From: Piromyces finnis finn
Lineage: Eukaryota > Fungi > Neocallimastigomycota
NCBI GenBank assembly: GCA_002104945.1
Contig: MCFH01000058.1
Location: 248,001-312,000, forward strand
Direction: 5' to 3'
Length of the DNA: 64,000 nt
Positions 16,413 through 62,194 of the stretch are shown piece by piece. The position numbers and the translations under genes were made by a program. Every line of letters begins with the position of its first letter. Position 1 is the stretch's first letter. The notes beneath the pieces were generated by a model. The model was not told the DNA's origin and made no database searches. It saw only the letters and a program-made list of their open reading frames with translations.

Positions 16413-16484
16413 AGGGGCGTTCCGGATTTGAACCGAAGACCTATTGATCTGCAGTCAATTGCTCTACCGCTGAGCTAACACCCC
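16413..16484 (-). tRNA. trnC: tRNA-Cys(GCA), copy 2
   Basis: Exact reverse complement of copy 1. Confidence 0.97.
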
Positions 16485-17584
16485 ATTTTTGTTATTTTTT
16501 TTAATAAATAATGAAATTAATAAATATAAAATTATTATTATACCTGATTTTGTCACGAATACTAGTGAAATTACAATTTCAAGATCACTTGGAATTGTGA
16601 AATCACTTATGAAAATTCAAAATCAACAAATATTTTATTTTCAAATAAATTATAAAATTTTATTAAGAAATATTTAAAAATTTAGAAAAGGTTAAAATAT
16701 GACCTTAACCCTTAATAATTTTTATAATAAATAACTTTAACCCTTATCGTTAAAATGGAATAAGAAAAAACACGCGTATCTCCTCAACGAATGACGATTT
16801 TTGAATAAAAATATTTTGGTTATAATTAAGTTCGTTAGAAAGCCACGCTCGAGACAAACAACATATCTTAAAATCAGGTCAATATCTCTGCTGGTTCACG
16901 AGATATTCCAATTTAAAGATATTTTGTTAGCAATGATTAATTGTTTATTCAGAGAATGATCACCCCTGATATATCAAACATAAATCATTCACTCAAAGTA
17001 TAAAAAATTATTGTTTAATTAAATTAAAATTATTTTCCGGAACTAATTAACTTTATTTTATAATAATTATTTCAATAACATAATTTATAATCTTTGAACT
17101 AGAGGATTATAATTATTAATATTATATTCAATGAATTATATTATAATTAAGAAATAATTAATATTATGAATATTATAAACAATAGTTATTTTTTAATAAT
17201 TAGGAATAAGTCTTAAGTTTAGTTTAAGTATTATAAAATATATTATGAATATAATCATGTATTGAAAAGTTATTTTAGTATTAAATGTAAAATTACAAAT
17301 AGTATAAATAGTTTAGAATAGTTTTATGAATTAAATCTTTGTAAAGATTATTATCTTATTAATACTTAATAAGTATTACTATTAAATAATCTTATTATTA
17401 TATATATTCTTTAAATAAAATAAAAAGGAATTATTTTAACTATAATACATAATATAATTATTCATTTATAAATCAATTAAGATTATTTTAATAAAACATT
17501 TTTTTTTCTAACCTAGTTATCTTTTAACCTTTTATTTAATTTAATATTTTAATATTAAATTATAAGTTTAGTAAAACTTTTACA

Positions 17585-17595
17585 ATAATCTTTAC
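17585..17595 (+). promoter_or_regulatory. Self-priming PBS of element D (ATAATCTTTAC)
   Basis: No TGG tRNA-type PBS; exact complement GTAAAGATTAT at 17341-17351, 38 nt after TATAAATA (17303). Confidence 0.8.
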
Positions 17596-17662
17596 CGCGT
17601 TTTTTACCATAACTACCTTAGGAAAAAACTTAATTTAAAAATTTAAAAAAAAAAAAAAAAAA

Positions 17663-18574
17663 ATGACTCAACCAACACCTAAACCAGTTCAACAATTCCT
17701 AAAGCCTCAAGATTTAGAAGAATTTAAGAAAAATCTTTGTGGTGAATTAGACAAGTATATCACTCAACAATTGGATAAAAATACCACCTCCTTGTTAGAA
17801 CGTATGGATGCTATGTTAAAGGAACTTAAGAGTCGTGCTAATTATACTGAAACCGAGGAATCTTCTACTGATTATGATGAAGATCATGATGTTATAATGC
17901 GTAATAGAACCTATCCTATCAAACAAGTACCAGATCCAGGATTCTTTACTGGTGATACTACTCAGACTGAGTTATTCTGCGAACTCTGCCAAGCTACCTT
18001 TAAAACTCCACCTAACAATCAACTATCTGAAGAAGTAAAAATTAACTTTGTTGTTGTTAGATTACGTGATTCTGCCAGAACTTGGTATCATATTAAATAT
18101 AAAGATGGTATTACTCCTATGACTATGAACGAACTATTAAGTGAATTAAACAAAGCTTTTTCAAATGTTACCAGTACCAAATTAGCCATGATTCAATTAA
18201 TAGAATTAAGACAAGCTTATGGAAAAGTGAACGATTATATTAACAAATTTAGAGATTTAAGTCGTTGTTTAGAGATAGATGACATTAGTCTTTCACTAAT
18301 ATTTTTAAATGGTTTACATCCAAAATATAAGAATGAAATTAAGAAAGCTGATATTTTACCTAACACTTTAAGTGAAATGGTTACAAAGTGTATAATTTTT
18401 GAAAATTCTCTTGCTACTAATAATAAATTAAATATCAATAATAATAATAATAAAAATCAACATTACAATAAGAGAAACAATAGGAAATTCAATAAGAATA
18501 AAACCCATTATCAAAATTCAAACAATAATAATAATTATGTCAATAAAGTTCAAAAAATGAACTCAAAAAACTAA
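17663..18574 (+). CDS. gag: Gag of element D (303 aa, no CCHC knuckle)
   Basis: Retrotransposon gag-like core (RLRDSARTWY...LRQAYGKVNDYINKF...FLNGLHPKY); homologous to the gag at 29762. Confidence 0.88.
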   Translation: MTQPTPKPVQQFLKPQDLEEFKKNLCGELDKYITQQLDKNTTSLLERMDAMLKELKSRANYTETEESSTDYDEDHDVIMRNRTYPIKQVPDPGFFTGDTTQTELFCELCQATFKTPPNNQLSEEVKINFVVVRLRDSARTWYHIKYKDGITPMTMNELLSELNKAFSNVTSTKLAMIQLIELRQAYGKVNDYINKFRDLSRCLEIDDISLSLIFLNGLHPKYKNEIKKADILPNTLSEMVTKCIIFENSLATNNKLNINNNNNKNQHYNKRNNRKFNKNKTHYQNSNNNNNYVNKVQKMNSKN

Positions 18575-21500
18575 GAAATGAACTCTCAAGAGAGTCTAAG
18601 AGAGTTCATAATACAAAAATAATACATTACAACTTTCCTACATATGACTCTAAAATAAATAAAAAATTGCCTACAACATTTTTCAACTTAAAATTTTTTA
18701 TCCCAATTAAATTAAACAAACTTTATGATTTAAAAAATTCAATTAATAAAAATCAATACAATTTAATTTTAGATAGTGGCTCATATTGCAACTTTATTTC
18801 AATCAACTTGGTCAATAAATTAAAACTAAAACCACACAAATTATTACACTCAATTGAAATAAATGGAATTAGTGGTTCAATATTTATTGATACATACACC
18901 TTCTTATATTTTAAGACTACTATCTATATTAATCATTCAAAATTTTTAATTACTTTTAAAGAAAAATTTCTAATTATTAAAAATCTTCCAACAGATTTGT
19001 TATTAGGCAATAAATTTTTACACAAATATCAACTACATTTTAATTATAATAAAAATTTTGTATATTCAAGTTTAAATTTTAACAATTTTAAAAAATTAAA
19101 TTCTAATAAAATTATATATAAAATTAATAAAAATCGATTGAATAAATCCAAAAATTTAAAAATTAAAACCATTAATCATAATAAATTAACTTCCAATACA
19201 TCTTTTAATAATTTGAAAAATTGCTCTAAACCAAAATATCAAAATTTCAGCTATAATTACTTTATTCACTCATTTTTAGCTAATAGTGAAAAAGATTATA
19301 ATACTGATGATGAAGATGATAATGAAGAAGACTTCAAATTAGAAGAAGTACCAGAACCATATCGTGATTTAGCGGAAGTTTTCAGCAAGGTTAAGGCTGA
19401 TAAACTACCACCACATAGGCTAACGGATTGTAAAATCGTTTTACAAAAAGATGCTTCTTTACATTATGGTCCTATATATCCTCTATCTGAAGATGAATCC
19501 CAAGTTCTTAAAGAATACATAGATGAAAATCTCAAGAAAGGATTCATTAGACCATCTGAATCTCCAGCTGGTTATCCTGTTTTATTTCAGAAAAAGAAGG
19601 ATGGATCGTTACGTCTTTGTATTGATTACAAAAAATTAAATGCAGTTACAATTCGCAATTCTTACCCACTTCCTCTAATTACTGATATTATCGAAAGAGT
19701 GAAAGGTGCTAAATTCTTTTCAAAATTAGATCTTCGTTCTGCTTACAATTTAGTGCGTATTCGTGAAGGAGACGAATATAAGACAGCTTTTAGAACTAAA
19801 TATGGTCACTATGAATATTTAGTAATGCCTTTTGATTTAAGAAATGCCCCTGCTACATTTCAATCATTTATTAATTCAGTATTACGCCCTTATTTAGAAA
19901 AATTTGTTATTTTATATTTAGATGATATTCTGATTTACTCGGAAACATTAGATGAACATATACAACATGTTCGTACTGTTCTCCAAACATTGCTCAAAAA
20001 TAATTTATTTGCTAAATTAAAGAAATGTGAATTTCACAAGCCAGAAGTTGAATTTTTAGGACACGTTATATCAGGCAATGGTATATCTACTGATCCAAAG
20101 AAAATTAAATCTGTCCAAGAATGGCCTACACCTAATTGTGTAAAAGATGTTCAACGCTTTGTTGGATTATGCAACTATTATAGAAGATTTATAAAAGATT
20201 TTGCTACTATTGCTAAACCGCTTCACAATTTAACAAAGAAAAATACTAGTTTTAATTGGAATGATAAATGTAATAACTCATTTTTAGAATTAAAAAAGAG
20301 ACTAATCTCTTCACCTATTTTATTACATCCAGATCCAACCAAACCATTTATTGTCGAATGCGATGCTAGTAATTTTGCCATTGGTTGTATACTTTCTCAA
20401 AAGGATGAAGATAACAAATTACATCCTGTAGCATATTATTCAAGATGTTTAAACAATGCTGAATTAAATTATTCAATTACTGAAAAGGAACTTTTAGCTA
20501 TAAAATGTGCATTTTCTACCTGGAGACATTTATTACTAGGTGCTAAATACCAAGTAACCGTTTTTACTGACCATAAAAACCTTCTATACACCTTAGGTGG
20601 TAAAGTCGGAAACCAACGTCAACATCGTTGGCATTTATTTTTCCAAGAATATAATTTTCAATTAATATACCGCCAAGGAAGAAAAAATGGTAAACCTGAT
20701 AGTTTGTCAAGAAGACCTGATTACGAGAAAAATAATGTTGAACCTAAACCAGAACATATATTAGATTATAAAAACGTTCCCGATACTCCATGTTTTGTTG
20801 GTATTGTTGGTTCTCTCATTGATCAAATAATAGAAAATTATAAGGATGATGAAAATGCGAATAATATTTATCTTTACTTTAGTCCTAATAATGCTAATCA
20901 AGGTTACTTTTACAGACCTTTCAGAAAAATGGAAAAATTTAAAATAAAAAATAATTTAATTTTATATAATAATTTAATTTATGTACCAGAAAAACTTCAT
21001 GTAGATATTTTAACCAGGTACCATGATAACGCTACTGCTGGACATTTAGGTATTCGAAGAACTGAAGAACTAATTAACCGTAATTTTTGGTGGCCCAAAA
21101 TGCATCAAGATATCGTAAATTTTGTCAATTCTTGCGAACAATGTTCCAGAAATAAAGTTAATAGACATAAAAGATATGATCTTTTAAGACCTTTAGAAAT
21201 TCCTGATCGCCCTTGGAAATCTATTGAAATCGATTTTCTTTGTGGTCTCCCTGAATCAAAAAAGTTTTCCGTTATAATGGTTGTTGTAGATCGCTTTTCA
21301 AAAATGATTCACCTTATTCCGTTCAAAGAAATACCTACAGCTGAAGAAACTGCCAAAGCTTTCCTAAAAAAATATTTTTAAACTCCATGGACTACCTACA
21401 GATATTTATACGGACAGAGGAACACAATTTACTAGTGCTTTATGGATAGAAATTATGGAAAAATTGCGTGTTAAGCCAAAAATAGCTACCACAGATCACC

Positions 21501-22273
21501 ATGAGACCGTTGGTCAAGTAGAACGTTGTAACTCTTTCATTGAACAATATTTACGTTGCTATTCAAGAACATTTTTCCACGATGACTGGATTGAATGGTT
21601 ACATCTAGCTGAATTTGTTTATAATAATACAGTTCATGAATCTACAAAACAAACTCCATTTTTCATTAATTATGGATTCCACCCACCTATGGATGATGTC
21701 TTTTTGTTTCTAGGTTCTGATTCAAACTTTAAATACATTAAAGATGTTAGTAAAAATTTCCTTTTAGTTAAAGATGTTTTGCTTAGATCTCAAGATTTAT
21801 ACAAAAGAGCTGCCGATAAGAAAAGAATTATTGCTCCTGAATTGAATGAAGGACAAAAAGTTTGGATTCATGCACCTCCTGCTTTTGCTACTACTGAAAA
21901 TGCCAAACTAGCGCCTCGTAAGTATGGTCCTTACAAGGTTTTAGAAGTTTTAAACAATGGTAATTATAAAATAGATATTTCAAAATCACCTTTTCCAAAA
22001 CACCACCCTGTATTTCACATATCGGAACTTGAACCTTATGTATCTACGCCAGATAAATTTAAAAATAGATTTAAATATAAAGAAACTAATGCAGAAATTA
22101 TAGAAATTGGTGACTTTAGGACAAATTATAAAGAAAAACGCTACGAATATAAAATTCGTTATAATCACCGCCTAAGTTGGCACTGGGTTCCTGCTACAGT
22201 AATAGAAAGTAACCCAAGATATCAAGAATTATTAATTCAATTCAATAAAAGTATTAGAAAACACAAAATCTAA
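18565..22273 (+). pseudogene. pol: Pol of element D (PR, RT, RNase H, IN, degenerate chromodomain), with a +1 A frameshift at about 21370
   Basis: The -1 frame is open from the slippery site; motifs LDSGS, YLDD, VECDAS, HHCC, D-D-E, GPY. An A7 run where the paralogue implies A6; MPFDL instead of MPFGL. Confidence 0.9.
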
Positions 22274-24999
22274 TTCTTTAAATTGCATTTCAACAATTTT
22301 ATTTTTTTAAAAATTTATTAATATCTTTCACTAACATTATGTTTTATTATAATTTGTATTACTCATCTAATACATTTCAACACAAATTTCAAAAATTTTT
22401 TTCTATATGAATGTTAAATTTCAATTCAATAATTTTTGATCCAACAATTTTATCAATTTATTTAATTTAAAACACAAAGTTTTTATAATGAAAATTAAAT
22501 ATTTAAAGAGAATAATTTTCAATTTATTTTAGCAGTACAATTACAAATATTTATATGTTGTTAATGCTTATTTTATTCTCTATTCAATAGTATCAATTTC
22601 AATATTGTCACTATCTCGATCGATCATTAAAATCAATATTTTTCAGTGACATTTTTTCAAAAAGTTTAGTTCAAAATTTTTTTTGTATTTAATGAAAAAA
22701 TTTTTTATTATTAAAAATTTTTCAAAAATTTCAAAAAATTTTTTTTTCAAAATCATATTAATTAAAGTTTATTTGATCAATTTTTGAAATTTCAATTATT
22801 TTAGCAAATGTTAACATTTTTCAAAAATAAAAAGTGTTTCAATATCCTAGGAATAATATTTCTTATTCAAATTTTAATTTTTCGTACGAATTTCAATTTT
22901 TTCACTCAATGATCAATTTAAATTTCAACATTTCTTTCAAAAATTTTATGAATTTGACTGAATGTTACACAAGAAAATGTTTTTTAATTTTATTTCATAT
23001 ATTGCAATATATTCAACATATTATATTAAATATATTCTTTATTTAGTTACCATTTTATTTCATGTTACACATACAACTATATATTGGTTTATATTTAATA
23101 TATACTACTTCAATTTATTTCAATTATACTTTATTATACAACTTTATTTTATATTATTTCAATCGCCTGGTATTCGATTTTTTTTGGCGGAGCGATGTCA
23201 CGAATACTAGTGAAATTACAATTTCAAGATCACTTGGAATTGTGAAATCACTTATGAAAATTCAAAATCAACAAATATTTTATTTTCAAATAAATTATAA
23301 AATTTTATTAAGAAATATTTAAAAATTTAGAAAAGGTTAAAATATGACCTTAACCCTTAATAATTTTTATAATAAATAACTTTAACCCTTATCGTTAAAA
23401 TGGAATAAGAAAAAACACGCGTATCTCCTCAACGAATGACGATTTTTGAATAAAAATATTTTGGTTATAATTAAGTTCGTTAGAAAGCCACGCTCGAGAC
23501 AAACAACATATCTTAAAATCAGGTCAATATCTCTGCTGGTTCACGAGATATTCCAATTTAAAGATATTTTGTTAGCAATGATTAATTGTTTATTCAGAGA
23601 ATGATCACCCCTGATATATCAAACATAAATCATTCACTCAAAGTATAAAAAATTATTGTTTAATTAAATTAAAATTATTTTCCGGAACTAATTAACTTTA
23701 TTTTATAATAATTATTTCAATAACATAATTTATAATCTTTGAACTAGAGGATTATAATTATTAATATTATATTCAATGAATTATATTATAATTAAGAAAT
23801 AATTAATATTATGAATATTATAAACAATAGTTATTTTTTAATAATTAGGAATAAGTCTTAAGTTTAGTTTAAGTATTATAAAATATATTATGAATATAAT
23901 CATGTATTGAAAAGTTATTTTAGTATTAAATGTAAAATTACAAATAGTATAAATAGTTTAGAATAGTTTTATGAATTAAATCTTTGTAAAGATTATTATC
24001 TTATTAATACTTAATAAGTATTACTATTAAATAATCTTATTATTATATATATTCTTTAAATAAAATAAAAAGGAATTATTTTAACTATAATACATAATAT
24101 AATTATTCATTTATAAATCAATTAAGATTATTTTAATAAAACATTTTTTTTTCTAACCTAGTTATCTTTTAACCTTTTATTTAATTTAATATTTTAATAT
24201 TAAATTATAAGTTTAGTAAAACTTTTACAGATTTTTAAGTTAACCCTAAAAGTAACTTAAAACAAGTTATAGTTTAATTAAGTACTTTACCAAAATTCTT
24301 AAATAAAATTAATCCTAAACACTGCATATATTTTGATTATTGAAAGAAAATAATAAACTTTAATTAATCGAGATCAAAATATATAACTCTTGTTAAATTA
24401 ATTGTTAAATTAAATATTTAATAACTTCGTTAGTAAATTACACTTTAAAAGTAAACAAATATAATAATTCATATTATAAAATAATATAATTAAACACCTT
24501 TATTAAAACATTAAAAATAATTATTACTTTAATTAATTGTAAAATAAACAACTTTTTATATTCTTTAACTTTTAATTATTTCTTTTATTGTTATTTCTAA
24601 TTACTTTTATTATTTTTATTGTAAATAGTTATTAATTTTATTGTTTTAATGTAAATAGTTTAAATTTAAAAGAAAATATAAATACATGTAAATATTCTTA
24701 TTTTAATCATTATTATTATTATTAATAAAGAAATATTATATAGTTAGATTAATATTTTATAATTTTAATAATCACTTTTATACTTAAATAAATAAAATTT
24801 TAAATATTTAAATATTAGAAAAACAAGTGTTTCTAATAAAACAATTTAGTGTTTTAACAAAACAATTTTATTAATTTTTATAAAAACGATTTTAAATCTT
24901 AATCAATATAACTTATATAGTTATAACAAAAGATATAATATAATAATCACTTTTTGAAGTAAAATTCAAAATTAAGATTATTATCAAATTATATCATTT

Positions 25000-26764
<1,765 letters not shown>

Positions 26765-26857
26765 AGTATTATAATAAAACATAATTTATATTAAATTAAT
26801 AAATAGGGTTAGGGCATTCTGACCTAACTTACCTAAATTCATCTTAGATCCTTAACA

Positions 26858-28595: not shown

Positions 28596-28947
28596 TGATA
28601 ATATTCGTATCTAAAATTTAATAAATAAAAATAAAGAAAATATAATAACTGATTTTTATACTTGTTCATTTGCAAGACTTTGTTAGTTTTATAATATAAA
28701 ATTTACTTTATTTAATTATAAAATTATAATATTATTTAATAACTCTAGTATTACTAATTAATTAAAATATATTATTTATAATCTTATTTCAGGGATTATT
28801 AATAACTTTTTTAATAATAAGTTTTATTATAATATAAAATTATATTTGAATTTAAAAATATATCCAATTTTTCGCTCTATACAATTATAAGCAATTTTTT
28901 TTTCATTTATATTATATAACATTTTAGATATTTAAAATAAGAAATAT

Positions 28948-29019
28948 AGGGGCGTTCCGGATTTGAACCGAAGACCTATTGATCTGCAGTCAATTGCTCT
29001 ACCGCTGAGCTAACACCCC
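28948..29019 (-). tRNA. trnC: tRNA-Cys(GCA), copy 3
   Basis: Exact reverse complement of copy 1. Confidence 0.97.
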
Positions 29020-29727
29020 TTTCATCTGACTTTGTCACAATAACATATATAAAAATTTAAAAAATTTGGACACATGGAAAAAATTGTCAAAATCACAATT
29101 CATGAAATTTGACATTTCATGAAATTTCATAATTTTGAATTAATAGTTAAATTAATTAAAATATTAATTTAATAATATTTTACTAATAATAGTTTATTTA
29201 ATATAAATATTAATTGGAAAGCTATTTATTATCCGGAGATAAATAGAGTGTAACAATTAATTAATATTAAACAAACCAATTAGTAAAATAAGATTCATTT
29301 AAATAATTATTAATATTATTTTTAACAACTTATTAATATCGATATTTAAAGAAAATTATATTATTATTACTATTATATCTTATTAATATTTATATTTATA
29401 TTATTATACATGTATAACTTAAATTATATTATTATTATACTTTATTAATATCAACATTATATTAAAAATGAAGTATAAATAAGTTGAACAAAGAACAACT
29501 TTAAGAAGTTCTTTGTGAGATTATTATACTCATTTTTATATAGTAAATTCAATATTTAAAATTAATAATTATCATTTACTTATATTATAAAAATTAAATA
29601 AAATATTTCTTAAAAAACTATATTTATTACTCTTTTATTTATAAAAATTTATTATTTACTATATAATTAAGCCTATCCTAACCTAGTAGACTTAATTATA
29701 ATTCTAAATCCACTCTAACTCTTGACA

Positions 29728-48887: not shown

Positions 48888-49382
48888 TGGTAAAGAATGA
48901 AATTTATAAATAATGAATTAATAGAATAGCTGATTTTAAGATTATATAAGCTTAATATAAATTAAAATAATAGTAAATAATCAAAATAATATAAAATATA
49001 AATGTTTAATTAAATTTTAAAAATGTAAAATATAAACAACTTTTGTTTATAAACAAACTTAAATGTAATTATTTATTATAATTAGAAATAGAAAATATTA
49101 TTTTTAAAGATTGTTACTAATTAGCCAGGAAAATTAGAATATTTTAAAATTATAATAAATTAATATATTTTTTTTTTATAATACATAGCGAGATGTATTA
49201 TACATTTATTTTAAATAAATAAACTAATATTATAAAACAAGATGTGTTTTTAAAACTTTAAATTATATTTAATAATTATATAAACTTGTAGAATGAGCAA
49301 GTAAAAATAATTCATTCAATTACACACAAATATACCACTTTCTAAGCTTATTTAGAATTAAGGTATATTTGAACGTGTGTCA
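48888..49382 (+). mobile_element. Solo LTR, family J
   Basis: TG...TGTCA termini; TCTG on both sides; homologous to 63743-64000 and 26858-27593. Confidence 0.8.
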
Positions 49383-50659: not shown

Positions 50660-52406
50660 TCGTGTTTATTCAGCTAGTTTTTATTATGTTTTTATGTGAG
50701 TAGCATATCATAGTGTAAGAAATAATAATTATTTGATACATAATTAATATTTCTTAGTTAAAATCATTAATTATTAATCATTAATTAATGTTATTAATAT
50801 TAGTTTATTTAAATAATTATTCTCATTTAAATTTATTTCAATTATTTATTTTCACTTAATTTTAATATCTTAAATTACATTTAGCCATTTAATTATATTA
50901 TTCATTAATATTTTATTTAATATTTTTATTAATTATATTTATGCATTTAATTAATTAATTTAATTAATTACTTTTATTTAACTTTATATTTTTATTAATT
51001 ATATTTATTCATTTAATTAATTAATTTAATTAATTACTTTTATTTAACTTTATATTTTTATCAAATATATTTAATTATTTATTTAATTAATTACTTTAAA
51101 ATAATTATTCATTGTTTAGGAATCAATATTTTAAGGTTTTTTCCAATTTCTAAAATAATTGGTTTTACTTAAAATATACGATGATCAATATGTATAGAAT
51201 GTTGATCCAACTTTGTTTAGGTTTTTCTTCTAATCTTTTCATAAACAAAAAATTATTTTGTTAAGATTAGATAAAATTTTAATTTAAACTTTATATTTAT
51301 TAAATAATATAAATAAGACTCTTGATTCTCTTCTAAGTAATCAAGAGTTATTATTATAAGAAACAAATTATAATAATAAAAGTGTTTTTAATTTTATTTT
51401 ACTTAACTTAGTTATAATAAAACATATTAACTTATTAAAGTGTAAAATTATTTCTACTCTTATAATAAACTCGAACTTAAAGATAAGTATTAATATTTAT
51501 TTTCTTTTTATTCTCAATTTATCAATAAATTGTAGTTAATAATTCTATTATATAATAATTTATAATGGAATTATTACACAACTGATATAATTTGATAATA
51601 ATCTTAATTTTGAATTTTACTTCAAAAAGTGATTATTATATTATATCTTTTGTTATAACTATATAAGTTATATTGATTAAGATTTAAGATCGCTTTTATA
51701 AAAATTAATAAAATTGTTTTGTTAAAACACTATATTGTTTTATTAGAAACACTTGTTTTTCTAATATTTAAATATTTAAAATTTTATTTATTTAAGTATA
51801 AAAGTGATTATTAAAATTATAAAATATTAATCTAACTATATAATATTTCTTTATTAATAATAATAATGATGATTAAAATAAGAATATTTACATGTATTTA
51901 TATTTTCTTTTAAATTTAAACTATTTACATTAAAACAATAAAATTAATAACTATTTACAATAAAAATAATAAAAGTAATTAGAAATAACAATAAAAGAAA
52001 TAATTAAAAGTTAAAGAATATAAAAAGTTGTTTATTTTACAATTAATTAAAGTAATAATTATTATTAATGTTTTAATAAAGGTGTTTAATTATATTATTT
52101 TATAACATGAATTATTATATTTGTTTACTTTTAAAGTGTAATTTACTAACGAAGTTATTAAATATTTAATTTAACAATTAATTTAACAAGAGTTATATAT
52201 TTTGATCTCGATTAATTAAAGTTTATTATTTTCTTTCAATAATCAAAATATATGCAGTGTTTAGGATTAATTTTATTTAAGAATTTTGGTAAAGTACTTA
52301 ATTAAACTATAACTTGTTTTAAGTTACTTTTAGGGTTAACTTAAAAATCAGGTATAATAATAATTTTATATTTATTAATTTCATTATTTATCAGTTTCTC
52401 GGCCTT

Positions 52407-55400
52407 TTAAGAATTAACTTCGTCCCTTGAAGTTAAATTTTGTTCTGGTAGAACGTAAGGAAAAATATTTTTAATATGTACATTTCTATCAAGTAGTTTT
52501 CCTGTATGTGGATCTTCAAGTACAACAGTATTAAATTTTTGTTTATTAACAACTTTATAAGGACCATAAAAATAAGGATTTAATTTACTTTTTCCTATTA
52601 ATCTTATCATAACATGATCACCCGGTTTATAAGTCTTCTTTAAAGCTTTGGATAAACCTATTCTATGTTCCCAATATTGATTAGCATGATTAGAATATTC
52701 AGTAGCTTGTTTTACCCAATTTTGATGCCTTAAAAATCTTCTAAAAATATATTCCTCTTCTGTTTCATTAGGATCTTTATAAATATCAGGAAACATTATT
52801 TCTAATGGCCATGTGTCTCTTCTACCATATAATAATTCGAAACTACTAAACTTTGTTTTTGAATTTTTGGTAGTTCTAAGTGACCATAATGCAGATGGTA
52901 GATATTCATCCCATTCAGATTCATTTTCAATTAAGAGTCTTAAAGTTTTTCCTATTTCTTTGTTTCTATTCTCAATCATACCATTAGATTGTGGGTGATG
53001 AGGAGAAACAAAATGAACCCATGATCCATATAAATCAATCATCATTTTAGTAATATCAGAAATAAATGAACTTCCATTATCAGTAACAATTATTTCTGGT
53101 GGACCATGTCTTGTTATTACTTCTATTAAAAATTTTATTACTTCTTCTGATTTCATATTTGGAATTGCTTTAGCTTCAACCCATTTAGTGAAATAATCAA
53201 CAAGGGTAATAATATAAGAATTTCCATGTTTAGTAAGTGGTAATGGGCCAACTATATCTAATCCGACTCTAGTAAATGGTTGTTCAATTGGGGTTATATT
53301 ATCTTCAGTATTTTTAGGTAAAGGCTTAGGTCTACAAAGTTGACATTTTCTACAGGACTTTACCCACATTCTAACATCATTCCAAATACCAGGCCAATAA
53401 TAAGATTTTAAAATTCTATTTGTGGTCTTTTCAGCACCTTCATGACCAACAGAATGAGCACGACTAATAATATCTTTTTTATCTTCATCTTTGTAAATAA
53501 CTTTAAGATATAATTCATCTTTTTTATAATAAAGAGTATTATCAACAACTTGATAATTTTTAGTAAAATATTTTTTTATTCCTTCAGGTAGGTCTAAATC
53601 TCTTGGATTAAAATCAGACAAAATTGCATAAGCACAATTTACTATTTCATCAGAATTTTTAGAAGGTAATCTTGAAAGGGCATCAGCAAAAACTTTTTTC
53701 TTTCCTTTATCATATTTTAATTCAATTTTATATTTATTAAATTCTTCAATCCATCTTGCATGTCTACCTTTTGATGGAATATTCTTTTTATAAAATCCAA
53801 GTAATGGTTTATGATCAGTAATTAATATGGTAGGATTTTTATTACTTATGATATATTGGCGAAATTGTAGAATTGCATAATAAATAGCTAATCCTTCAAG
53901 GTCAGTAACAGAATAATTCTTTTCTGAAGTAGATAAAGTACGACTAATACAACAAATTGGATGTTCCAATTTGTCCCCCTCCACCTGTAAGAGTACAGCA
54001 CCAATGCCATTAGTTGATGCATCAGTACGAATAATAAATTCTTTATTAAAATCAGGATAACTTAAAATAGGATCACTTAATAGACATTGTTGGATATCTT
54101 CAAAAGCATTATTACATTCTTGTGACCAAATATATTCTTGGTCTTTCTTTAATAAATTAAAAAGAGAGCTTGCTCTAATAGAAAAATTTTGAATAAACTT
54201 GCGGTAGTAACTAGCTAAACCTAGGAATGATCTTAATTCATTAACATTTCTTGGAGCATTCCATAAAGCAATACTTTGAACTTTAGAAGGAACAGTTTTT
54301 AATCCGTTAGGTGTAAGTACATGTCCTAGTACTTCTACCTTTTCTTGAAAGAATTTACATTTTTGTAAATTAAGAGAAAGATTATATTTAGATAATATTT
54401 CAAAAACTTGTTGCAAATGATAAAGATGTTCTTCTGGTGATTTAGAATAAACAACAATATCATCAATGTAAACAAAAAGACATTTACCAATTAATGGTAA
54501 GAGAATCCTATTCATTTCTCGCTGGAAAGTAACGGGAGCATTAGTTAAACCAAATGGCATTACTTTAAAATTATAATTACCAAATTTCGTTGTAAAAGCA
54601 GTTTTTTCAATATCATTTGGGTTCATAGGAATTTGGTGGTAGCCAGAATATAAATCTAAAGCAGAAAATATTTTTGCACCATTAACAGAAGATATTAATT
54701 CATCAATAAAAGGAAGTGCATAAGAATCCTTAATAGTAATTTCATTAAGTCTTCTATAATCAATACACATTCTCCATTTACCATTTTTCTTTTGTACAAG
54801 TAAAACTGGAAATGACCATGGAGAGTGAGAAGGAGTAATTAAACCTTTATCAAGTAATGAAAGAATTTCACTTTTTAAAATATCAGCATGTTCCTTAGAT
54901 AATTTATAAGGTTTTAATTTTATTGGTTTATTAGTAGTAGTAATTATAGAATGAGGTTCTAAATCCGCAGTAGTTAATTGAGACATTGATGTAGCCATAC
55001 AATTTTTATATTTATTTATAATGTGTTCAAATTTTGATTTAATATTATCAGGTGTTGAATTTAAGATTTCTTTTAACGTATCTTGAAATTCTTGGTTTTC
55101 TTCTTTTGAAATAATTATAGAATTCATTAAGGGAATATCATTAGCATCATTATCATTACTATTGATAATGTTTGTAATTTTCTTTAAACCTTTTTTAGTT
55201 TTCTGGTATATATAATCATCATCAGGGTCAATAAATAAACTGTATTTCTTTTGAATACCTCTTCCAAAAATTATATCAAAGTATGGATTACTTTGTTCAA
55301 TAATATAAAATTTTTCTAAAATAGTACAACAATTATTAATATTTATTTTTAAAGTAGTAAAAACATTTGTAGGAACAGTAGTACCATTAGCAATAGTTAT

Positions 55401-56258
55401 ATTTTGTTCCTCATCACTTTTTTCAATATTTTTATTTGATAGTTTATTAAAACCATTTGTAGTAATGATATTGACATTTGCGCCAGTATCATAAAGAATT
55501 TTTAAATATTTTCCATCTATATCACCAATTATTAATGGAATATTAGAGTTATTAAAGGAGTACATCACTTTTGCAACTTTAGGTTTACATCCTTGTTCTA
55601 ATTCTTTTCTAAGTGATGGACTAGCAGAAAGTAATTGGGAAAGACTTATTTTTGGATATAAATTATTTGCTTCTTTAATTATACTAAATTTATCTTTGGT
55701 TTTTAACACTTGTATTTCTGTCATATTTCTTTTTGTGGTTACTTTGGTTTTGACAGAATTTTTCTTTACTTTTACATCACTTGTTTCATTATTATTTTTA
55801 AAAGTTTCTTCATTGGTAGAATCATTAGAGTTATTAATTTCAATAGGTTGGATATGTTCTTTTGTATTAGTAACTTCTTCTAAAGGTATTTCATTTATAT
55901 TATTTTGTTCTTCTTCACTTTCTATTTCTATTTCTTCATTTGGGGTTTCTTCCATAACTTCATCTTTATCTTCGCTAATTTTTCTTCTACGAGTATCTCT
56001 AATAGCCTTCTTTTGTTGTTTTAAATTCCTAATATTAGGTTGGTTAAGTATTGAGGGTTTGACAATACTTTTATTATTTGGTGATATTTTATTTTTATCT
56101 AATGTTTTAACATTTATTTTCTTCTTTTGAGCCGCATTAATAGAATAATTATTTTCATTAGAGATATTGGAATTTATTTGTGCTTCTTGTGTATTTTGTG
56201 AACTATTTGCAATTTTAGTTTTTATGGGAGATTGCTTACTCCCATTATTTAGTTTAAA
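52407..56258 (-). CDS. pol: Pol of element A (PR, RT, RNase H, IN with GPY; no chromodomain), uninterrupted
   Basis: The -1 frame is open from TTTAAAC through the 1182-aa ORF; motifs YDTGA, YIDD, RTDAS, HHCC, D-D-E. Confidence 0.93.
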   Translation of the reverse strand, partial: FKLNNGSKQSPIKTKIANSSQNTQEAQINSNISNENNYSINAAQKKKINVKTLDKNKISPNNKSIVKPSILNQPNIRNLKQQKKAIRDTRRRKISEDKDEVMEETPNEEIEIESEEEQNNINEIPLEEVTNTKEHIQPIEINNSNDSTNEETFKNNNETSDVKVKKNSVKTKVTTKRNMTEIQVLKTKDKFSIIKEANNLYPKISLSQLLSASPSLRKELEQGCKPKVAKVMYSFNNSNIPLIIGDIDGKYLKILYDTGANVNIITTNGFNKLSNKNIEKSDEEQNITIANGTTVPTNVFTTLKININNCCTILEKFYIIEQSNPYFDIIFGRGIQKKYSLFIDPDDDYIYQKTKKGLKKITNIINSNDNDANDIPLMNSIIISKEENQEFQDTLKEILNSTPDNIKSKFEHIINKYKNCMATSMSQLTTADLEPHSIITTTNKPIKLKPYKLSKEHADILKSEILSLLDKGLITPSHSPWSFPVLLVQKKNGKWRMCIDYRRLNEITIKDSYALPFIDELISSVNGAKIFSALDLYSGYHQIPMNPNDIEKTAFTTKFGNYNFKVMPFGLTNAPVTFQREMNRILLPLIGKCLFVYIDDIVVYSKSPEEHLYHLQQVFEILSKYNLSLNLQKCKFFQEKVEVLGHVLTPNGLKTVPSKVQSIALWNAPRNVNELRSFLGLASYYRKFIQNFSIRASSLFNLLKKDQEYIWSQECNNAFEDIQQCLLSDPILSYPDFNKEFIIRTDASTNGIGAVLLQVEGDKLEHPICCISRTLSTSEKNYSVTDLEGLAIYYAILQFRQYIISNKNPTILITDHKPLLGFYKKNIPSKGRHARWIEEFNKYKIELKYDKGKKKVFADALSRLPSKNSDEIVNCAYAILSDFNPRDLDLPEGIKKYFTKNYQVVDNTLYYKKDELYLKVIYKDEDKKDIISRAHSVGHEGAEKTTNRILKSYYWPGIWNDVRMWVKSCRKCQLCRPKPLPKNTEDNITPIEQPFTRVGLDIVGPLPLTKHGNSYIITLVDYFTKWVEAKAIPNMKSEEVIKFLIEVITRHGPPEIIVTDNGSSFISDITKMMIDLYGSWVHFVSPHHPQSNGMIENRNKEIGKTLRLLIENESEWDEYLPSALWSLRTTKNSKTKFSSFELLYGRRDTWPLEIMFPDIYKDPNETEEEYIFRRFLRHQNWVKQATEYSNHANQYWEHRIGLSKALKKTYKPGDHVMIRLIGKSKLNPYFYGPYKVVNKQKFNTVVLEDPHTGKLLDRNVHIKNIFPYVLPEQNLTSRDEVNS

Positions 56259-57217
56259 TGATTGTATTCGTCATCTAATTCTGGACAATCATTCGTAGTA
56301 TGACCTATTCTTTTACAATTTAAGCAAACATTAATTTTTAGGTCAGCAAGCTTTTGAGTTATTTCTTTTAACTCATCATCATTATTTTGTGGGTATTTTA
56401 AGGTACTTTTTCTTTGCTCAACGTTTTGCTTAATATTATTAAATCTTGAATAATTATTGTTATCATTATTGTAGTTATTATTTTGAATATTACTATTATA
56501 ATTATTATTTCTGTAGTTATTAGTATAATTTCTATTATTATAATTTTTAAAACTATTTTGAGTAGTGTTATTGTTATTCATTCGGTTATAACTATTAAAA
56601 TTATTTGAATATGCTCTATCATTATTTCTTTGAGCATTATTATCATTTGGAGACCTTCTAGAACTAATGGAAGTTCTTATTTTTGGTCTATTTTCTTCAA
56701 CTATATTGAAAATTTTCTCTTTCTTAATAGTAATGTTTCTGGCTTCTTCTAAACTTTTTGGTTCAGCTTCTAAAAGTGCTTCGTAAGTTTTAGTAAGGTT
56801 TCTAAAAGCATTAATATAGTAGGACAATATGATTTCATTTGACATTTTTAAGTTTGTTTTATTTATTAAAGAGTCAAATTTAATATTGAATTCAGATACA
56901 CTTTCATTTTTCTTTATTGTAATAGTAGACAATTCTAATAATCTAGAATTCTTTGATACTGAACCTTTAAAATGACTTTTAAGGTTTTTGATGATGGTAT
57001 TATAATCATCTGGTGTTTCTTTATATAATGCATTAACTACAATTGTTCTAGCTGTACCTGTAGTTAATGATATAAGGTATTCTAACTTTTCTTGTTCTGG
57101 TACCTTATATAAATTACACCAATGTTTAAAAGAAAATTCCCAATCATCAAATTCAACCTTTGTTGAACCCAAAATAGGTATTCTATTAAAGGTAATACCT
57201 ATAGTAGTATTATCCAT
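56249..57217 (-). CDS. gag: Gag of element A (322 aa, CCHC knuckle CLNCKRIGHTTNDC)
   Basis: Intact ORF upstream of pol. Confidence 0.9.
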   Translation of the reverse strand: MDNTTIGITFNRIPILGSTKVEFDDWEFSFKHWCNLYKVPEQEKLEYLISLTTGTARTIVVNALYKETPDDYNTIIKNLKSHFKGSVSKNSRLLELSTITIKKNESVSEFNIKFDSLINKTNLKMSNEIILSYYINAFRNLTKTYEALLEAEPKSLEEARNITIKKEKIFNIVEENRPKIRTSISSRRSPNDNNAQRNNDRAYSNNFNSYNRMNNNNTTQNSFKNYNNRNYTNNYRNNNYNSNIQNNNYNNDNNNYSRFNNIKQNVEQRKSTLKYPQNNDDELKEITQKLADLKINVCLNCKRIGHTTNDCPELDDEYNHLN

Positions 57218-58689
57218 TATTACTTTTTATTTTTTCTTGTTCTGGTACCTTATATAAATTACACCAATGTTTAAAAGAAAATTCCCAATCATCAAATTCA
57301 ACCTTTGTTGAACCCAAAATAGGTATTCTATTAAAGGTAATACCTTTAGTATTATTATCCATTATTACTTTTTATTTTTACTTTATTTAATTTTATTTTA
57401 ATATTTTATTTAAAAACTCAATTTTTATTTATTCTCAATAATTTAGTTATAAGAACAATAATATGTTTTTATTTACAACAATCTTTATTTACAATAATTT
57501 AGTTATAAGTACAGTAATATGTTTTTATTTACAATAGTCTTTATTTACAATAATATAATTTTATTTACAGGTATTTTATTTATTATACTTTTATTAATAT
57601 AATCTTATATAACGTCTATATAATGTAATATAAAAGGAGTAATCGGTTGTTACTTGTAGACACTTGTTTTAGTTTTATTGTAATTAAGAAGATTTTATTT
57701 TTGAGAAAATGTTAAGAATATATTTTATTTATATTAAGTTATTTATATATTAGTATTGTAAAAAAAAATATTTAATTTAGAGTAGGATGTTTATTTTTAT
57801 TTCTTTATTATAAAGCAGAAAATAATATTGATTATGTTATTATAGTACCTTCAGAGTACCCGACAGTTTCGTCAACGTGCCTTTCGACCTCCACTAACTA
57901 ACCGTCATAAATATTAAGTGGTGTAATATTTACTTATTAGTTAGCGCTCTACTCCCCCACGATATGTGATAAAACTGCACTCTTACTAACTTACTATAAA
58001 ACACTTTAATTATCTTAGTAATTAATTAACCGAAAAGATAAACAAAAGTTATTTTTCGCTGAAAATTAACTAAAAAGACAACTCAATATTATTGCTTTTA
58101 TTATTTAAAATTTATAACAATACTTTTAATTTTATTTGACCGATGATTATATTTTATAATTTTTATTAAATGATTTTTATCTTTAATTTATAAATTATAA
58201 TTATTAATTTATAATTATAATTTATGTATTTCTTTTTCTTTTTTTAAAAAAAATAATTAAATATAAAACTTTATTTACAGGATTTATTTTTCGCTTTTTA
58301 GTGCCTTACAACAATTTAATTAACCGGCAAAAGCTACTAACTAGAGGTGATATACTAGACCTCAAAATAAATTTAAACTATATATTTTTATGTCGCTTTA
58401 CCTTCACGACAAACCTTTAGCCTTCGGTGACTAAAGTTCCTTATTCGCCAGAGTTCACAAAAGTATTCAACTTGAGAGTCCTGTATTGTGTGCTTTTTAT
58501 CACACTAACAATCCCTTCCCCCAAGTAAGCGTGCTATTCACACTCGTCCTACTTTTACAAATACTTCAGTGATTAACAGCTATAATTTCTAACCAACTGA
58601 AACTAGTTAATTATACACTGAAACTCTGTATATGAGCTCTATACGCTCCTAGTATATTTTTACAAGTATTTTTATTTATAAAGTTTTAT

Positions 58690-58720
<31 letters not shown>

Positions 58721-58924
58721 TTTGGTTTGTTTGGTGTATATATATTATTATATATATATACTTAAATCTTTATTTATTATTATTTTGATTTATTTTTATT
58801 ATATATTTATTTTTATGTATATATATCTAATGTATATATACCTATTTTATTATTATAATTAATTCTTTCAACTTTCTTATTTATAATATTATCAATCTAT
58901 TTATCTAATAATTTTTCTATACTA

Positions 58925-58955
<31 letters not shown>

Positions 58956-59315
58956 CTTTTCTTATTTAAAATATCTATATATTTTATCTAATATATAATG
59001 TTTATATATCAATTTACTATATTAATACTATACTATTAAGTATTATAATTTATTTATTTTATTTTAATATTGATTTAATAATATTTAAATAATATTTCAA
59101 TATTGAATATTGATTTATTATTTTAATATTATTTTATTATTTAATAAGTTATAATTTCTAAATAGATAAAATATTGAGAATATTTAACTATTCTGTTAAC
59201 TATCTATTCTATACTATTATAACTTGATTATTTAATTAATTTCATAGAATATTTTACTATTCTATATGAAATTTTTATATAAAGAAAATTTTATATATTT
59301 ACCTTATTTTGATTC

Positions 59316-59332
59316 TCCGGTTCGAAGGACCA
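59316..59332 (-). promoter_or_regulatory. PBS TGGTCCTTCGAACCGGA, probably tRNA-Tyr
   Basis: 1 nt from the LTR CA end; its complement TCCGGTTCGAAGGACCA resembles the eukaryotic tRNA-Tyr 3' end as I recall it. Confidence 0.7.
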
Positions 59333-60402
59333 TTGATATAATGTGATAATAATCTTAATTTTGAATTTTACTTCAAAAAGTGATTATTATATTATATCTT
59401 TTGTTATAACTATATAAGTTATATTGATTAAGATTTAAGATCGTTTTTATAAAAATTAATAAAATTGTTTTGTTAAAACACTAAATTGTTTTATTAGAAA
59501 CACTTGTTTTTCTAATATTTAAATATTTAAAATTTTATTTATTTAAGTATAAAAGTGATTATTAAAATTATAAAATATTAATCTAACTATATACAAAAAG
59601 TGATTATTATATTATATCTTTTGTTATAACTATATAAGTTATATTGATTAAGATTTAAGATCGTTTTTATAAAAATTAATAAAATTGTTTTGTTAAAACA
59701 CTAAATTGTTTTATTAGAAACACTTGTTTTTCTAATATTTAAATATTTAAAATTTTATTTATTTAAGTATAAAAGTGATTATTAAAATTATAAAATATTA
59801 ATCTAACTATATAATATTTCTTTATTAATAATAATAATGATGATTAAAATAAGAATATTTACATGTATTTATATTTTCTTTTAATCTAACTATATAATAT
59901 TTCTTTATTAATAATAATAATGATGATTAAAATAAGAATATTTACATGTATTTATATTTTCTTTTAGATTTAAACTATTTACATTAAAACAATAAAATTA
60001 ATAACTATTTACAATAAAAATAATAAAAGTAATTAGAAATAACAATAAAAGAAATAATTAAAAGTTAAAAAATATAAAAAGTTGTTTATTTTACAATTAA
60101 TTAAAGTAATAATTATTCTTAATGTTTTAATAAAGGTGTTTAATTATATTATTTTATAACATGAATTATTATATTTGTTTACTTTTAAAGTGTAATTTAC
60201 TAACGAAGTTATTAAATATTTAATTTAACAATTAATTTAACAAAAGTTATATATTTTGATCTCGATTAATTAAAGTTAATTATTTTCTTTCAATAATCAA
60301 AATATATGCAGTGTTTAGGATTAATTTTATTTAAGAATTTTGGTAAAGTACTTAATTAAACTATAACTTGTTTTAAGTTACTTTTAGGGTTAACTTAAAA
60401 AT

Positions 60403-61045
60403 TGTCAAAATCACAATTCATGAAATTTGACATTTCATGAAATTTCATAATTTTGAATTATTAGTTAAATTAATTAAAATATTAATTTAATAATATTTTA
60501 CTAATAATAGTTTATTTAATATAAATATTAATTGGAAAGCTATTTATTATCCGGAGATAAATAGAGTGTAACAATTAATTAATATTAAACAAACCAATTA
60601 GTAAAATAAGATTCATTTAAATAATTATTAATATTATTTTTAACAACTTATTAATATCGATATTTAAAGAAAATTATATTATTATTACTATTATATTTTA
60701 TTAATATTTATATTTATATTATTATACATGTATAACTTAAATTATATTATTATTATACTTTATTAATATCAACATTATATTAAAAATGAAGTATAAATAA
60801 GTTGAACAAAGAACAACTTTAAGAAGTTCTTTGTGAGATTATTATACTCATTTTTATATAGTAAATTCAATATTTAAAATTAATAATTATCATTTACTTA
60901 TATTATAAAAATTAAATAAAATATTTCTTAAAAAATTATATTTATTACTCTTTTATTTATAAAAATTTATTATTTACTATATAATTAAGCCTATCCTAAC
61001 CTAGTAGACTTAATTATAATTCTAAATCCACTCTAACTCTTGACA
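60403..61045 (+). mobile_element. Solo LTR, family C (643 bp)
   Basis: Near-identical to 29085-29727; TSD AAAAT at 60398-60402 and 61046-61050. Confidence 0.95.
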
Positions 61046-61051
61046 AAAATC

Positions 61052-62056
61052 TGTTAAGTTTTTGGATTTGGTTATGCGGCCAGGTCAGAATGTTATCAAT
61101 TATATAGTAAATATATTTTTAAGAAATTAAATTTAAATATAAAATAACCCTTTAAACTTCCAAATGAAAAATTAATATTTATTCTTTAGAATAATTTTTT
61201 TTTTTTTTTTATAAAATTTTATTTATTTATTAATAATAATATAAATGATAATATATTTAATAACTATATAATTAAGATTATAACTATAATCTTTACAAAG
61301 AATTAAAATCAAATTCAATTCATTCTATTTTATATTCTTTGTTCAGATTATTAAATTGATAAAAATAAAGTATTACATGTAATATGTTAATAATATAATA
61401 AGATTGTTTGTTTGCTTGTTTGTTTGTTTTGTCATGACATAAAATAAAATAAACATATGATTAATCATTTAAACACTTGATCCATTAACCTATTTTATAA
61501 TAATTAAAATTATTTAATTTATAAATGTTAACTGTTACACCTAAATGGTTTAGTTCTATTTTTAGTAACAGTCACTATCATTAATTAAATTAATATAATT
61601 AGAATTTCTATTGATATCTTTTTAATTTTCGTCAAGTCATAAGAAATGTCTATGATCCATATTTGATATCACATTAATTTTAATTTACTTATTAAAATCT
61701 TCAAATGATCATATCTTCCTTAAATGACCAGTTAGAAGGACCGCGATTGTACCAAAATGTAGCTTTTTCCTTAAGCTTTCTAATAAACCTGGTTTCACAG
61801 CCGTAGTACTTATAGCCGTAGCGATCGTTTTTGGCGAGTTACACCATGTTTCGTGTTTGTTTATTTTTGGTTAAGGGTTATAGTGTATTGATATTAAATT
61901 TTTTGAAATCATAACCCTTTCACTGAATCAGAATTTAAAAGGTGACTTTTAAAGGTGTTTTAAAATAATTATTGGGATCATTTAATTCTAATTATTATGT
62001 TTAATTAATTATAGATATTATCTGAATTTGTTTTAAATCCAGTTAATATCTTCACA
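61052..62056 (-). mobile_element. Solo LTR, family B (1005 bp)
   Basis: TG...CA termini; TSD AAATC at 61047-61051 and 62057-62061; GTAAAGATTAT primer motif on the minus strand (61286-61296), 38 nt after a TATA-like motif. Confidence 0.85.
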
Positions 62057-62122
62057 AAATCAGGTTTAATAATAATTTTATATTTATTAATTTCATTATT
62101 TTTCAATAGAATCAATAAAATA

Positions 62123-62194
62123 GGGGTGTTAGCTCAGCGGTAGAGCAATTGACTGCAGATCAATAGGTCTTCGGTTCAAATCCGGAACACCCCT
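62123..62194 (+). tRNA. trnC: tRNA-Cys(GCA), copy 4 (G68A variant)
   Basis: Same as copy 1 except ACACCCC, which converts a U.G pair to U-A. Confidence 0.97.

Follow-up and report, generated by a model that had tools for sequence, protein, structure and literature searches.

Our results show that the tRNA-Cys genes in a stretch of 64,000 nucleotides (nt) from the anaerobic gut fungus Piromyces finnis (contig MCFH01000058.1, positions 248,001 to 312,000 of the forward strand; here called the window, in whose own numbering all coordinates are given) are accompanied by long terminal repeat (LTR) retrotransposons at two narrow distances. All four tRNA-Cys(GCA) genes, t1 to t4, have an LTR terminus 13-17 nt upstream of nucleotide 1 of the mature tRNA (the near window), and t2, t3 and t4 each have a second element at 65-66 nt (the far window; elements D, C and B, respectively), bounded by a clean 5-bp target-site duplication (TSD). 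The two distances follow lineage, family A being found at the near one and the sister families C and D at the far one, and the same distances recur at tRNA genes of other isotypes on contigs from other samples. We consider it probable that this tRNA-Cys cluster has been struck repeatedly by Ty3/gypsy elements whose integrases are aimed at genes that RNA polymerase III (Pol III) transcribes.

Every junction was re-read base by base, the gap being taken as the number of nucleotides that intervene between the LTR terminus and mature tRNA nucleotide 1. The near gaps of 14, 17, 13 and 17 nt at t1 to t4, which had been proposed in an earlier, sequence-only reading of this DNA, were borne out. The terminus belongs to a family A LTR at t1 (14 nt, LTR 2726-3523), at t2 (17 nt, start at 16502) and at t4 (17 nt, the 5' LTR of a full-length A element, end at 62105), and to a family F LTR at t3 (13 nt, start at 29033); the TSDs of the near insertions lie at about -9 to -17 from mature nucleotide 1. 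Older layers become visible when later insertions are removed computationally. Among those claimed in the earlier reading, the A LTR ending at 2718 (17 nt from t1) and the element of family I could be reconstructed, the latter beginning three bases past the A LTR end at 24996 and lying 16 nt from t2 once A is removed; layers G, L and E, for which that reading gives no coordinates, were not confirmed as repeats in the window, where the lone candidate terminus, at 51578, is single-copy. The gaps of 14, 17, 13 and 17 nt, together with the peeled 17 and 16 nt, show the concentration within a few bp upstream of the gene that characterises Pol III start-site targeting of the Ty3 or DGLT-A type.

In the far window, D lies 66 nt from t2 (TSD GATTT) inside an A LTR, and C lies 65 nt from t3 (TSD AAAAT) inside an F LTR, a family whose uninterrupted copies at 63013 and 63235 preserve the empty site. 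B lies 66 nt from t4 (TSD AAATC), in the same A-LTR pentanucleotide that D entered at t2. A solo C LTR (TSD AAAAT) stands 67 nt from t4 after removal of B and one TSD copy, its target being one base further out than that of B. The order of the B and C insertions at t4 is formally ambiguous, as either fits the sequence. Parsimony favours C first, since with B first the landing of C 1 nt from the distal end of B would be a coincidence. The junctions and TSDs, which occupy -61 to -67 from mature nucleotide 1, agree with the earlier values of 66, 65, 66 and, reconstructed, 67 nt. They also uphold the claim that distance and not host sequence is what the far insertions share, since the junctions are clean in A and F hosts and a further insertion, on the outside contig L015 described below, stands at 65 nt; taken together, far insertions have entered A and F LTRs, at an approximate position an I-like LTR, and in L015 what appears to be native DNA. 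A second B copy, near t1, reconstructs to about 68 nt from that gene; its 5' part and TSD are lost, the gap can only be placed at 66-72 nt, and it was rejected as a clean far-window event. The similarity between the DNA that follows the solo C at t4 and that following C at t3 was also set aside, for it is merely the C LTR itself.

Chance placement does not account for these positions. With the 36 catalogued LTR termini of the window and four tRNAs randomly placed, the mean number of hits was 0.011 for the near and 0.007 for the far window, where 4 and 3 were observed (Poisson probabilities of 7e-10 and 5e-8); the two windows were defined post hoc, and both are still significant after a 40-fold correction.

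The events are mostly, but not all, independent. After peeling, the A junctions of t1 and t2 are identical, with a 17-nt spacer and a terminal TCA-to-TTA variant, and the two hits, previously counted as separate, are probably one event followed by later duplication or ectopic recombination. About 50 nt of 3' flank is common to t2, t3 and t4 at 84-91% identity, and at t3 and t4 it runs on into the same I-like LTR body (83-86%); the 3' flanks of t1 and t2 are unrelated. Judged from these flanks, t2, t3 and t4 are old paralogues. On the upstream side, each of them has a different set of elements: t2 has A, I and D, t3 has F and C, and t4 has A, B and C. Each upstream insertion has its own TSD and its own spacer, with the t1/t2 A junction as the shared exception. 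The LTR pairs are 100% identical in D, 99.7% in C and about 99% in A, against 84-91% for the shared tRNA flanks, and therefore the insertions are younger than the tRNA duplication. We count at least four independent near events (A at t1 with 14 nt, A at t1/t2 with 17 nt, F at t3 and A at t4), with family I at t2 as a fifth, and three to four independent far events in the window, B at t1 being a further candidate.

Two lineages, in the window and in other samples

Pfam searches revealed gag and the protease, reverse transcriptase (RT), RNase H and integrase (IN) region in four elements, D, C, H and A. The order of the pol matches (RVT_1, RT_RNaseH, Integrase_H2C2, rve) is the same in A, C, D and H, Retrotrans_gag matches in C and D, and by their sequence the four elements are assigned to Ty3/gypsy. 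C and D share 63-69% of amino acids (aa) in pol and 51% in gag, and A and H share 53% in RT. Between A and C/D the identity falls to 35-39% in RT and 28% in IN, and similarity in gag is not detectable. The description of the targeting elements as several unrelated families could thus not be maintained: the coding ones are all of Ty3/gypsy type and fall into two deep lineages, one of which contains C and D as sister families. Use of the far window is probably one trait, that of the C/D clade.

The two lineages also differ in their relation to Ty3. Compared with the PDB by sequence, the C integrase has the Ty3 polyprotein as its best match (7q5b_A, E=1e-49), whereas the A integrase matches Ty3 weakly (E=4e-18), ranked behind a foamy-virus integrase. 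An AlphaFold model of the C integrase (29-sequence alignment, mean predicted local distance difference test score, pLDDT, of 74) finds its best fold match (E=8e-25) in 7q5b_B, from the structure of the Ty3 intasome seated on a tRNA gene with TFIIIB bound. After the SH3-like C-terminal domain (CTD; SH3_Tf2-1), the C/D clade carries a further conserved C-terminal domain of about 55 residues. AlphaFold models predict that it forms three strands and a helix (pLDDT 85-95; block-mean pLDDT 91-97 in the core when folded alone), and Foldseek matches it almost solely to chromodomains (probability 0.96-0.99, TM 0.6-0.75). Pfam PF00385 does not match C, D or the C/D-clade relatives (62-84% identity to D pol), and the next-closest clade has a canonical chromodomain (PF00385). 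In the clade alignment the first position of the aromatic cage is non-aromatic and the W of the KW motif is Y, both assigned by eye, without structural superposition. The modelled fold indicates that C and D are chromovirus derivatives with a divergent chromodomain.

Evidence from outside the window came from gut-fungal gypsy contigs, about 170 kb in all, on which pol proteins homologous to those of A and D are encoded. These contain only two tRNA genes (ARAGORN and Rfam), and both lie within the predicted windows. In the metagenomic contig L015 (JGI sample 3300021285), a tRNA-Val(TAC) gene at 6211-6283 on the minus strand is separated by 65 nt, in divergent orientation, from a tandem element of the C/D clade whose aa identity to D is 65% and whose 5' LTR starts with TGTCAAGG at 6349; no TG-type LTR terminus lies in the near window within these 65 nt. 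In L011 (ENA), 15 nt separate a tRNA-Arg(TCT) gene from the end of the 3' LTR of an A-like element (71% aa identity); this LTR starts after a purine tract, as in its relative L018, and has the inverted ends TGATAA..TTATCA. The isotypes hit are tRNA-Cys alone in the window and, outside it, this tRNA-Arg, on a possibly chimeric contig, and the tRNA-Val.

The C/D-like contigs L019 and L024 have no tool-confirmed tRNA, their 3' flank alone being visible. The contigs of more distant gypsy relatives (L009, L010 and L020-L023) show no tRNA either, and therefore some gut-fungal gypsy families are not tRNA-linked. An exact-protein look-up of the A pol open reading frame (ORF) found no match on record, a metagenome scan returned eight short A-like loci without flanks, and a scan of viral contigs found nothing.

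Orientation is biased but not fixed. The 5' end faces the tRNA in the full-length copies of the C/D clade (D, C and the L015 element) and in all A copies of the window; the solo C at t4 and the L011 element have the opposite orientation.

A separate observation concerns the C/D relative L013 (ENA ERZ27247052), in which a stretch of about 74 nt (375-446) with a B-box-like GAGTTCGATTC, a 9-bp hairpin and a run of five T ends exactly 65 nt before the start of a C/D-clade 5' LTR (512). It was not counted as a tRNA, being called neither by Rfam (E<=1) nor by ARAGORN, and it may represent the decayed remains of a tRNA gene, or else a Pol III unit of some other kind.

Proposed tethering to Pol III genes and the alternatives

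The Pol III start site lies about 10 bp upstream of the tRNA's mature end (PMC5911963). In the Ty3 structure, TFIIIB spans about -15 to -32 from the start site, and the CTD and vestigial chromodomain of the integrase contact TBP and Brf1 and set the integration site as a ruler (PMC8632968). We propose that the near-window lineage, comprising family A and probably the solo-LTR families F and I, would insert at or just upstream of the Pol III start site, and that the far-window lineage would take in the sister families C and D together with related elements from other gut-fungal samples, and probably family B. Each new near insertion would shift the older LTRs outward and build a stack, and far insertions would therefore usually fall about 50 nt inside the LTR currently abutting the tRNA. 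By analogy with Ty3, TFIIIB, sitting upstream of the start site, would serve as the ruler. Like Ty3, the near-window intasome would use the downstream side of TFIIIB for docking, and the C/D intasome, through its CTD and divergent chromodomain, the upstream face, the far cuts (-61 to -67) falling roughly two helical turns beyond the upstream edge of TFIIIB. Such tethering on Pol III genes is a plausible mechanism and, by comparison with Ty3, appears the best one. More tentatively, and with some doubt, we suggest that the C/D clade may represent a second, previously undescribed docking geometry of an LTR-retrotransposon intasome. In this geometry a Ty3-like integrase with a re-purposed chromodomain would engage the upstream face of TFIIIB and cut about 20-25 bp beyond it, mirroring Ty3, and it would coexist with an unrelated gypsy lineage convergent on the start-site window.

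Several points weigh against targeting as we describe it. All four tRNAs of the window are of one isotype, three of them are old paralogues, and the A junctions of t1 and t2 are not independent. Within the window, the far insertions are described equally well by a position some 50 nt inward from a host LTR terminus, and L015 is the only locus that tells the two descriptions apart. In L011 the 5' LTR end is of a different subtype and the contig may be a chimeric assembly, and neither L012 nor L013, two contigs of a C/D relative, has a tool-confirmed tRNA upstream. The role assigned to TFIIIB is argued by analogy.

The elements themselves raise further points of this kind. The A pol ORF is uninterrupted (1182 aa). 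Pol is broken once in D and once in C: in D (region 18667-22273) inside the integrase core, between an ORF end at 21381 and an ORF start at 21455, and in C (region 30886-34572) as stop codons between the RNase H and integrase ORFs (32964/33085). D and C may be defective copies that were mobilised in trans and inserted very recently, or the breaks may be sequencing errors. The full-length A lacks a matching TSD (ACAAC in the distal flank, 51578-51583; ATAGA on the tRNA side, 62105-62110) and may have arisen by recombination between two A copies in a stack at t4. Lastly, the A LTR at 47479 and the A-related element H are not at a tRNA, and no tRNA split by H was found beside this LTR, even after computational removal of H. 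An A LTR with about 0.8 kb beyond its 3' end is present twice in the window, inverted and at 78% identity (47479-49100 versus 52393-50759), which suggests that a whole LTR stack was copied without its tRNA gene; the tRNA-less A LTR may have originated in this way.

Among the alternatives, the one that survives best, unlikely as we judge it, places the far ruler in chromatin: the integrase would read the edge of the first positioned upstream nucleosome, comparably to Ty1, which uses upstream nucleosomes (PMC5911963), or insertions would survive only at harmless sites. The C/D integrases do keep a chromodomain-like fold, a module that binds histone tails in canonical chromoviruses, but at least its first aromatic cage position has apparently been lost, as has happened in chromodomains of the Ty3 and Skipper-2 types, in which the reading of H3K9me is gone. 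Moreover, a spread of 3 nt (65-67) over five events is far sharper than that of Ty1, with its two sites per nucleosome over up to about 1 kb, and selection alone cannot yield nucleotide-level precision in intergenic DNA of 85% A+T.

A second possibility is that C, D and B prefer a sequence or structural hot spot in other LTRs, about 50 nt inward from the outer end, in which case 65-67 nt would simply be 13-17 plus about 50. Measured from the host-LTR terminus, the positions are indeed equally tight (49 for D in A, 49 for B in A, 50 for C in A, 52 for C in F and 51 for B in the I-like LTR), and D and B hit the same A-LTR pentanucleotide and the solo C the adjacent one. We nevertheless find it quite unlikely, as the ends of the A, F and I-like hosts have no common sequence at the site, and several LTRs that offer it are unhit, namely three A LTRs with no tRNA directly beside them, at 47479, 51583 (the 3' LTR) and 1908, the last of which abutted t1 until a later insertion moved it outward, and the F copies at 63013 and 63235. 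The 65-nt interval of L015 holds no TG-type LTR terminus in the near window and therefore separates a position 65 nt from the tRNA from one about 50 nt inside a host LTR.

That a single ancestral tRNA-Cys locus was segmentally duplicated with its elements already in place, so that the distances were inherited, was foreseen in the sequence-only reading and holds for the tRNA genes in part, with the identical t1/t2 junction, the shared 3' flanks of t2, t3 and t4, the common I-like LTR beyond t3 and t4 and the single Cys(GCA) isotype on its side, but as a full explanation it is largely refuted, and in our view highly improbable, by upstream insertions, TSDs and spacers that differ by locus, by LTR pairs at 99-100% against flanks at 84-91%, and by the same distances at tRNA-Val and tRNA-Arg on unrelated contigs.

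Other features of the window

The G+C content of the sequence is 12-30%. ARAGORN and Rfam agree that no Rfam-scoring RNA gene besides t1 to t4 is present in the window, and self-comparison shows that nested LTR retrotransposons make up most of the remaining sequence (Table 1). D, C, H and I have LTR pairs that are 99-100% identical, with TG..CA ends; polypurine tracts and primer-binding sites (PBS) were also seen.

Table 1. tRNA genes and retrotransposon features of the window
Feature	Coordinates	Strand	Remarks
tRNA-Cys(GCA) t1	3538-3609	+	ARAGORN; Rfam 67.9 bits
tRNA-Cys(GCA) t2	16413-16484	-	ARAGORN and Rfam
tRNA-Cys(GCA) t3	28948-29019	-	ARAGORN and Rfam
tRNA-Cys(GCA) t4	62123-62194	+	ARAGORN and Rfam
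Family B LTR copy	1275-1852		92% identity with the copy at t4; lies 51 nt inward from the end of a remnant I-like LTR (1853-1903)
Older family A LTR	1908-2718	-	Shifted outward; 17 nt from t1 after removal of 2726-3523 and its TSD
Family A solo LTR	2726-3523	-	5' terminus TGATAAAT... toward t1, 14 nt; 4-bp TSD
Family A solo LTR	16502-24996	+	Pieces 16502-16550 and 24235-24996, split by D; 5' terminus 17 nt from t2
Element D, Ty3/gypsy (by sequence)	16551-24229	+	LTRs 1034 nt, 100% identical; TSD GATTT; divergent orientation to t2
Family I, short non-coding LTR element	25000-26700	+	5' LTR 25000-25860 with (TAA)n run; PBS TGGTGGAGAATCC
Family F LTR, first 52 nt	29033-29084	+	Terminus TGTCACAATAAC, 13 nt from t3; resumes at 35769
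Element C, Ty3/gypsy (by sequence)	29085-35763	+	LTRs 643 nt, 99.7% identical; TSD AAAAT; divergent orientation to t3; predicted divergent chromodomain on integrase
Element H, gypsy (by sequence)	37477-46767	+	LTRs 783 nt; TSD TTTTT; 53% aa to A in RT; no adjoining tRNA
Family A LTR, control	47479-48291	+	No tRNA nearby; no far-window insertion
Full-length family A	51583-62105	-	3' LTR 51583-52393; 5' LTR 59334-60402 and 62062-62105
Family A ORFs	pol 52407-55955, gag 56249-57217	-	ORF and Pfam
Solo C LTR	60403-61045	+	Within the A 5' LTR; TSD AAAAT; 67 nt from t4 without B
Family B insertion	61052-62056		TG...CA ends; TSD AAATC; 66 nt from t4

Some observations concern the LTRs next to the tRNA genes. 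A TATAAAA-type motif occurs in the A LTR (16525-16531 and 62081-62087) and in the F LTR (29047-29057), 28-47 nt upstream of the mature tRNA end, which is roughly the place expected for TBP and TFIIIB. It could be a product of chance in DNA of 85% A+T, or the end of the LTR may provide the tRNA gene with a TATA element through which the gene stays active and remains a target. On the other side of the genes, an LTR-like start, TGTTAT..., ends the flank of t2, t3 and t4 and sits 27-71 nt downstream of them (regions 16320-16412, 28596-28947, 62195-62540 and 25346-25860); the tRNA-Cys genes appear to have multiplied along with a downstream LTR.

Several exact tandem duplications are present. One, with a 220-nt unit, lies inside the A 5' LTR (59374-59813). 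Another, of 222 nt (62913-63356), doubles the start of the F LTR together with 100 nt of the DNA upstream of it, and a third, of about 145 nt, is found in the A leader (57087-57383). The 3' LTR of family I starts at 26660, following a purine tract, and its 5' LTR is about 310 nt longer than this 3' LTR through expansion of the (TAA)n microsatellite; long microsatellites of this type are present at 25033-25345, 9100-9570 and 26690-26805.

A 544-nt retroposon with a poly(A) tail is present in two copies, 99.8% identical. The copy at 578-1130 adjoins the end of an A-like LTR and has the TSD TCTTCAAAATT; the copy at 39775-40318 lies antisense in H, between gag and pol, with poly(T) and a 14-bp TSD, AGTTATTATAATAA. 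The retroposon holds a B-box-like GGTTCGACCCC and is not recognised as a tRNA by Rfam. Judging by these traits, it looks like a recently active element of the short interspersed type moved by the machinery of long interspersed nuclear elements (LINEs). We considered whether the A-like LTR terminus at 566 had targeted a tRNA-like retroposon head and rejected this, given the absence of a tRNA by Rfam and a TSD which places the retroposon as the one that landed beside the terminus.

Two host genes are located between the element stacks. One (7168-8883, minus strand) encodes a GH9 cellulase fragment with three CBM10 dockerin repeats (Pfam), a combination associated with anaerobic gut fungi (Neocallimastigomycota), and the other (13741-15195, plus strand) encodes a seven-transmembrane protein resembling class C G-protein-coupled receptors, fused with a domain like bacterial solute-binding proteins.

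Comparison with known systems and significance

The elements described here resemble Ty3 of Saccharomyces cerevisiae, with its sigma LTRs, in the order protease, RT, RNase H, IN, in the 5-bp TSD and in start-site insertion upstream of tRNA genes (PMC8632968, PMC5911963), and C and D, like Ty3, have a divergent or vestigial chromodomain after the CTD. They differ in that C/D, the closest to Ty3, uses 65-67 nt and not the start site, and in that family A, which uses the near window, is only distantly related to Ty3; the near window here therefore looks convergent. The distance of 13-17 nt matches Ty3, sigma and DGLT-A, and lies within the range of the last of these, a gypsy-type element of the AT-rich Dictyostelium genome that inserts 13-33 bp upstream of where the mature tRNA starts (13-16 in some species) in either orientation (PMC5006619, PMC5911963). 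Tj1 of Schizosaccharomyces japonicus is a Ty3/gypsy element for which insertion upstream of tRNA and 5S genes has been shown experimentally (PMC4600332), but there the distance to the mature end is 5-11 bp and the tandem orientation is fixed, whereas the near window here holds insertions at 13-17 nt in both orientations. In the Dictyostelium chromovirus Skipper-2, a diverged chromodomain goes with association with tRNA genes (PMC5006619, PMC5911963); unlike the elements reported here, Skipper-2 is found downstream of tRNA genes and not 65 nt upstream, and in another host kingdom.

A discrete zone well upstream of the start site, as in the far window, is used by TRE5 of Dictyostelium and NLTR-B of Polysphondylium, which lie 40-54 bp and 39-64 bp, respectively, from the mature coding sequence; the orientation of TRE5 is divergent, and the protein of its ORF1 binds TBP, Brf1 and Bdp1 (PMC5911963). 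Unlike the elements of the far window, these are LINE-like, move by target-primed reverse transcription and have broader windows, mostly closer than 65-67 nt; TRE5 and NLTR-B possess an apurinic/apyrimidinic endonuclease and no LTRs, and the far-window elements have LTRs, integrase and 5-bp TSDs. Targeting of the Ty1 type does not fit the far window either, with a spread of 3 nt, in a small sample, and a gypsy and not a copia domain order. The table of a 2018 review gives start-site windows for Ty3, Tj1 and Yarrowia elements (relative to the start site) and for Tca8 and DGLT-A (relative to the mature sequence), broad windows of about 1 kb for Ty1, Ty2 and Ty4, and windows at 40-64 bp upstream solely for the non-LTR TRE5 and NLTR-B (PMC5911963); no LTR element with a sharp window at about 65 nt is present in it.

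The near window represents an already known mode of targeting, probably convergent here, and a far window such as the Ty3-like clade uses is given for no LTR element in that review (PMC5911963). For the Neocallimastigomycota, a full-text literature search, with most subscription-journal papers outside its coverage, found no account of tRNA-linked retrotransposons, in agreement with the sequence-only reading, which knew of no description in anaerobic gut fungi.

What do these insertions mean for the biology of the elements and their hosts? The targeting of Pol III genes is a textbook safe haven that has been characterised mainly in yeasts and social amoebae, and the present data add a third group, the early-diverging anaerobic gut fungi with their very A+T-rich genomes. 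Here two lineages within one genome would apply two different rulers to the same target, and the far-window clade makes it testable how the C-terminus of an integrase sets the distance to TFIIIB. The tRNA genes predict where elements are located, which is an aid to the assembly and annotation of gut-fungal genomes, and the integrases may be useful starting points for tools of site-directed insertion in organisms that resist engineering.

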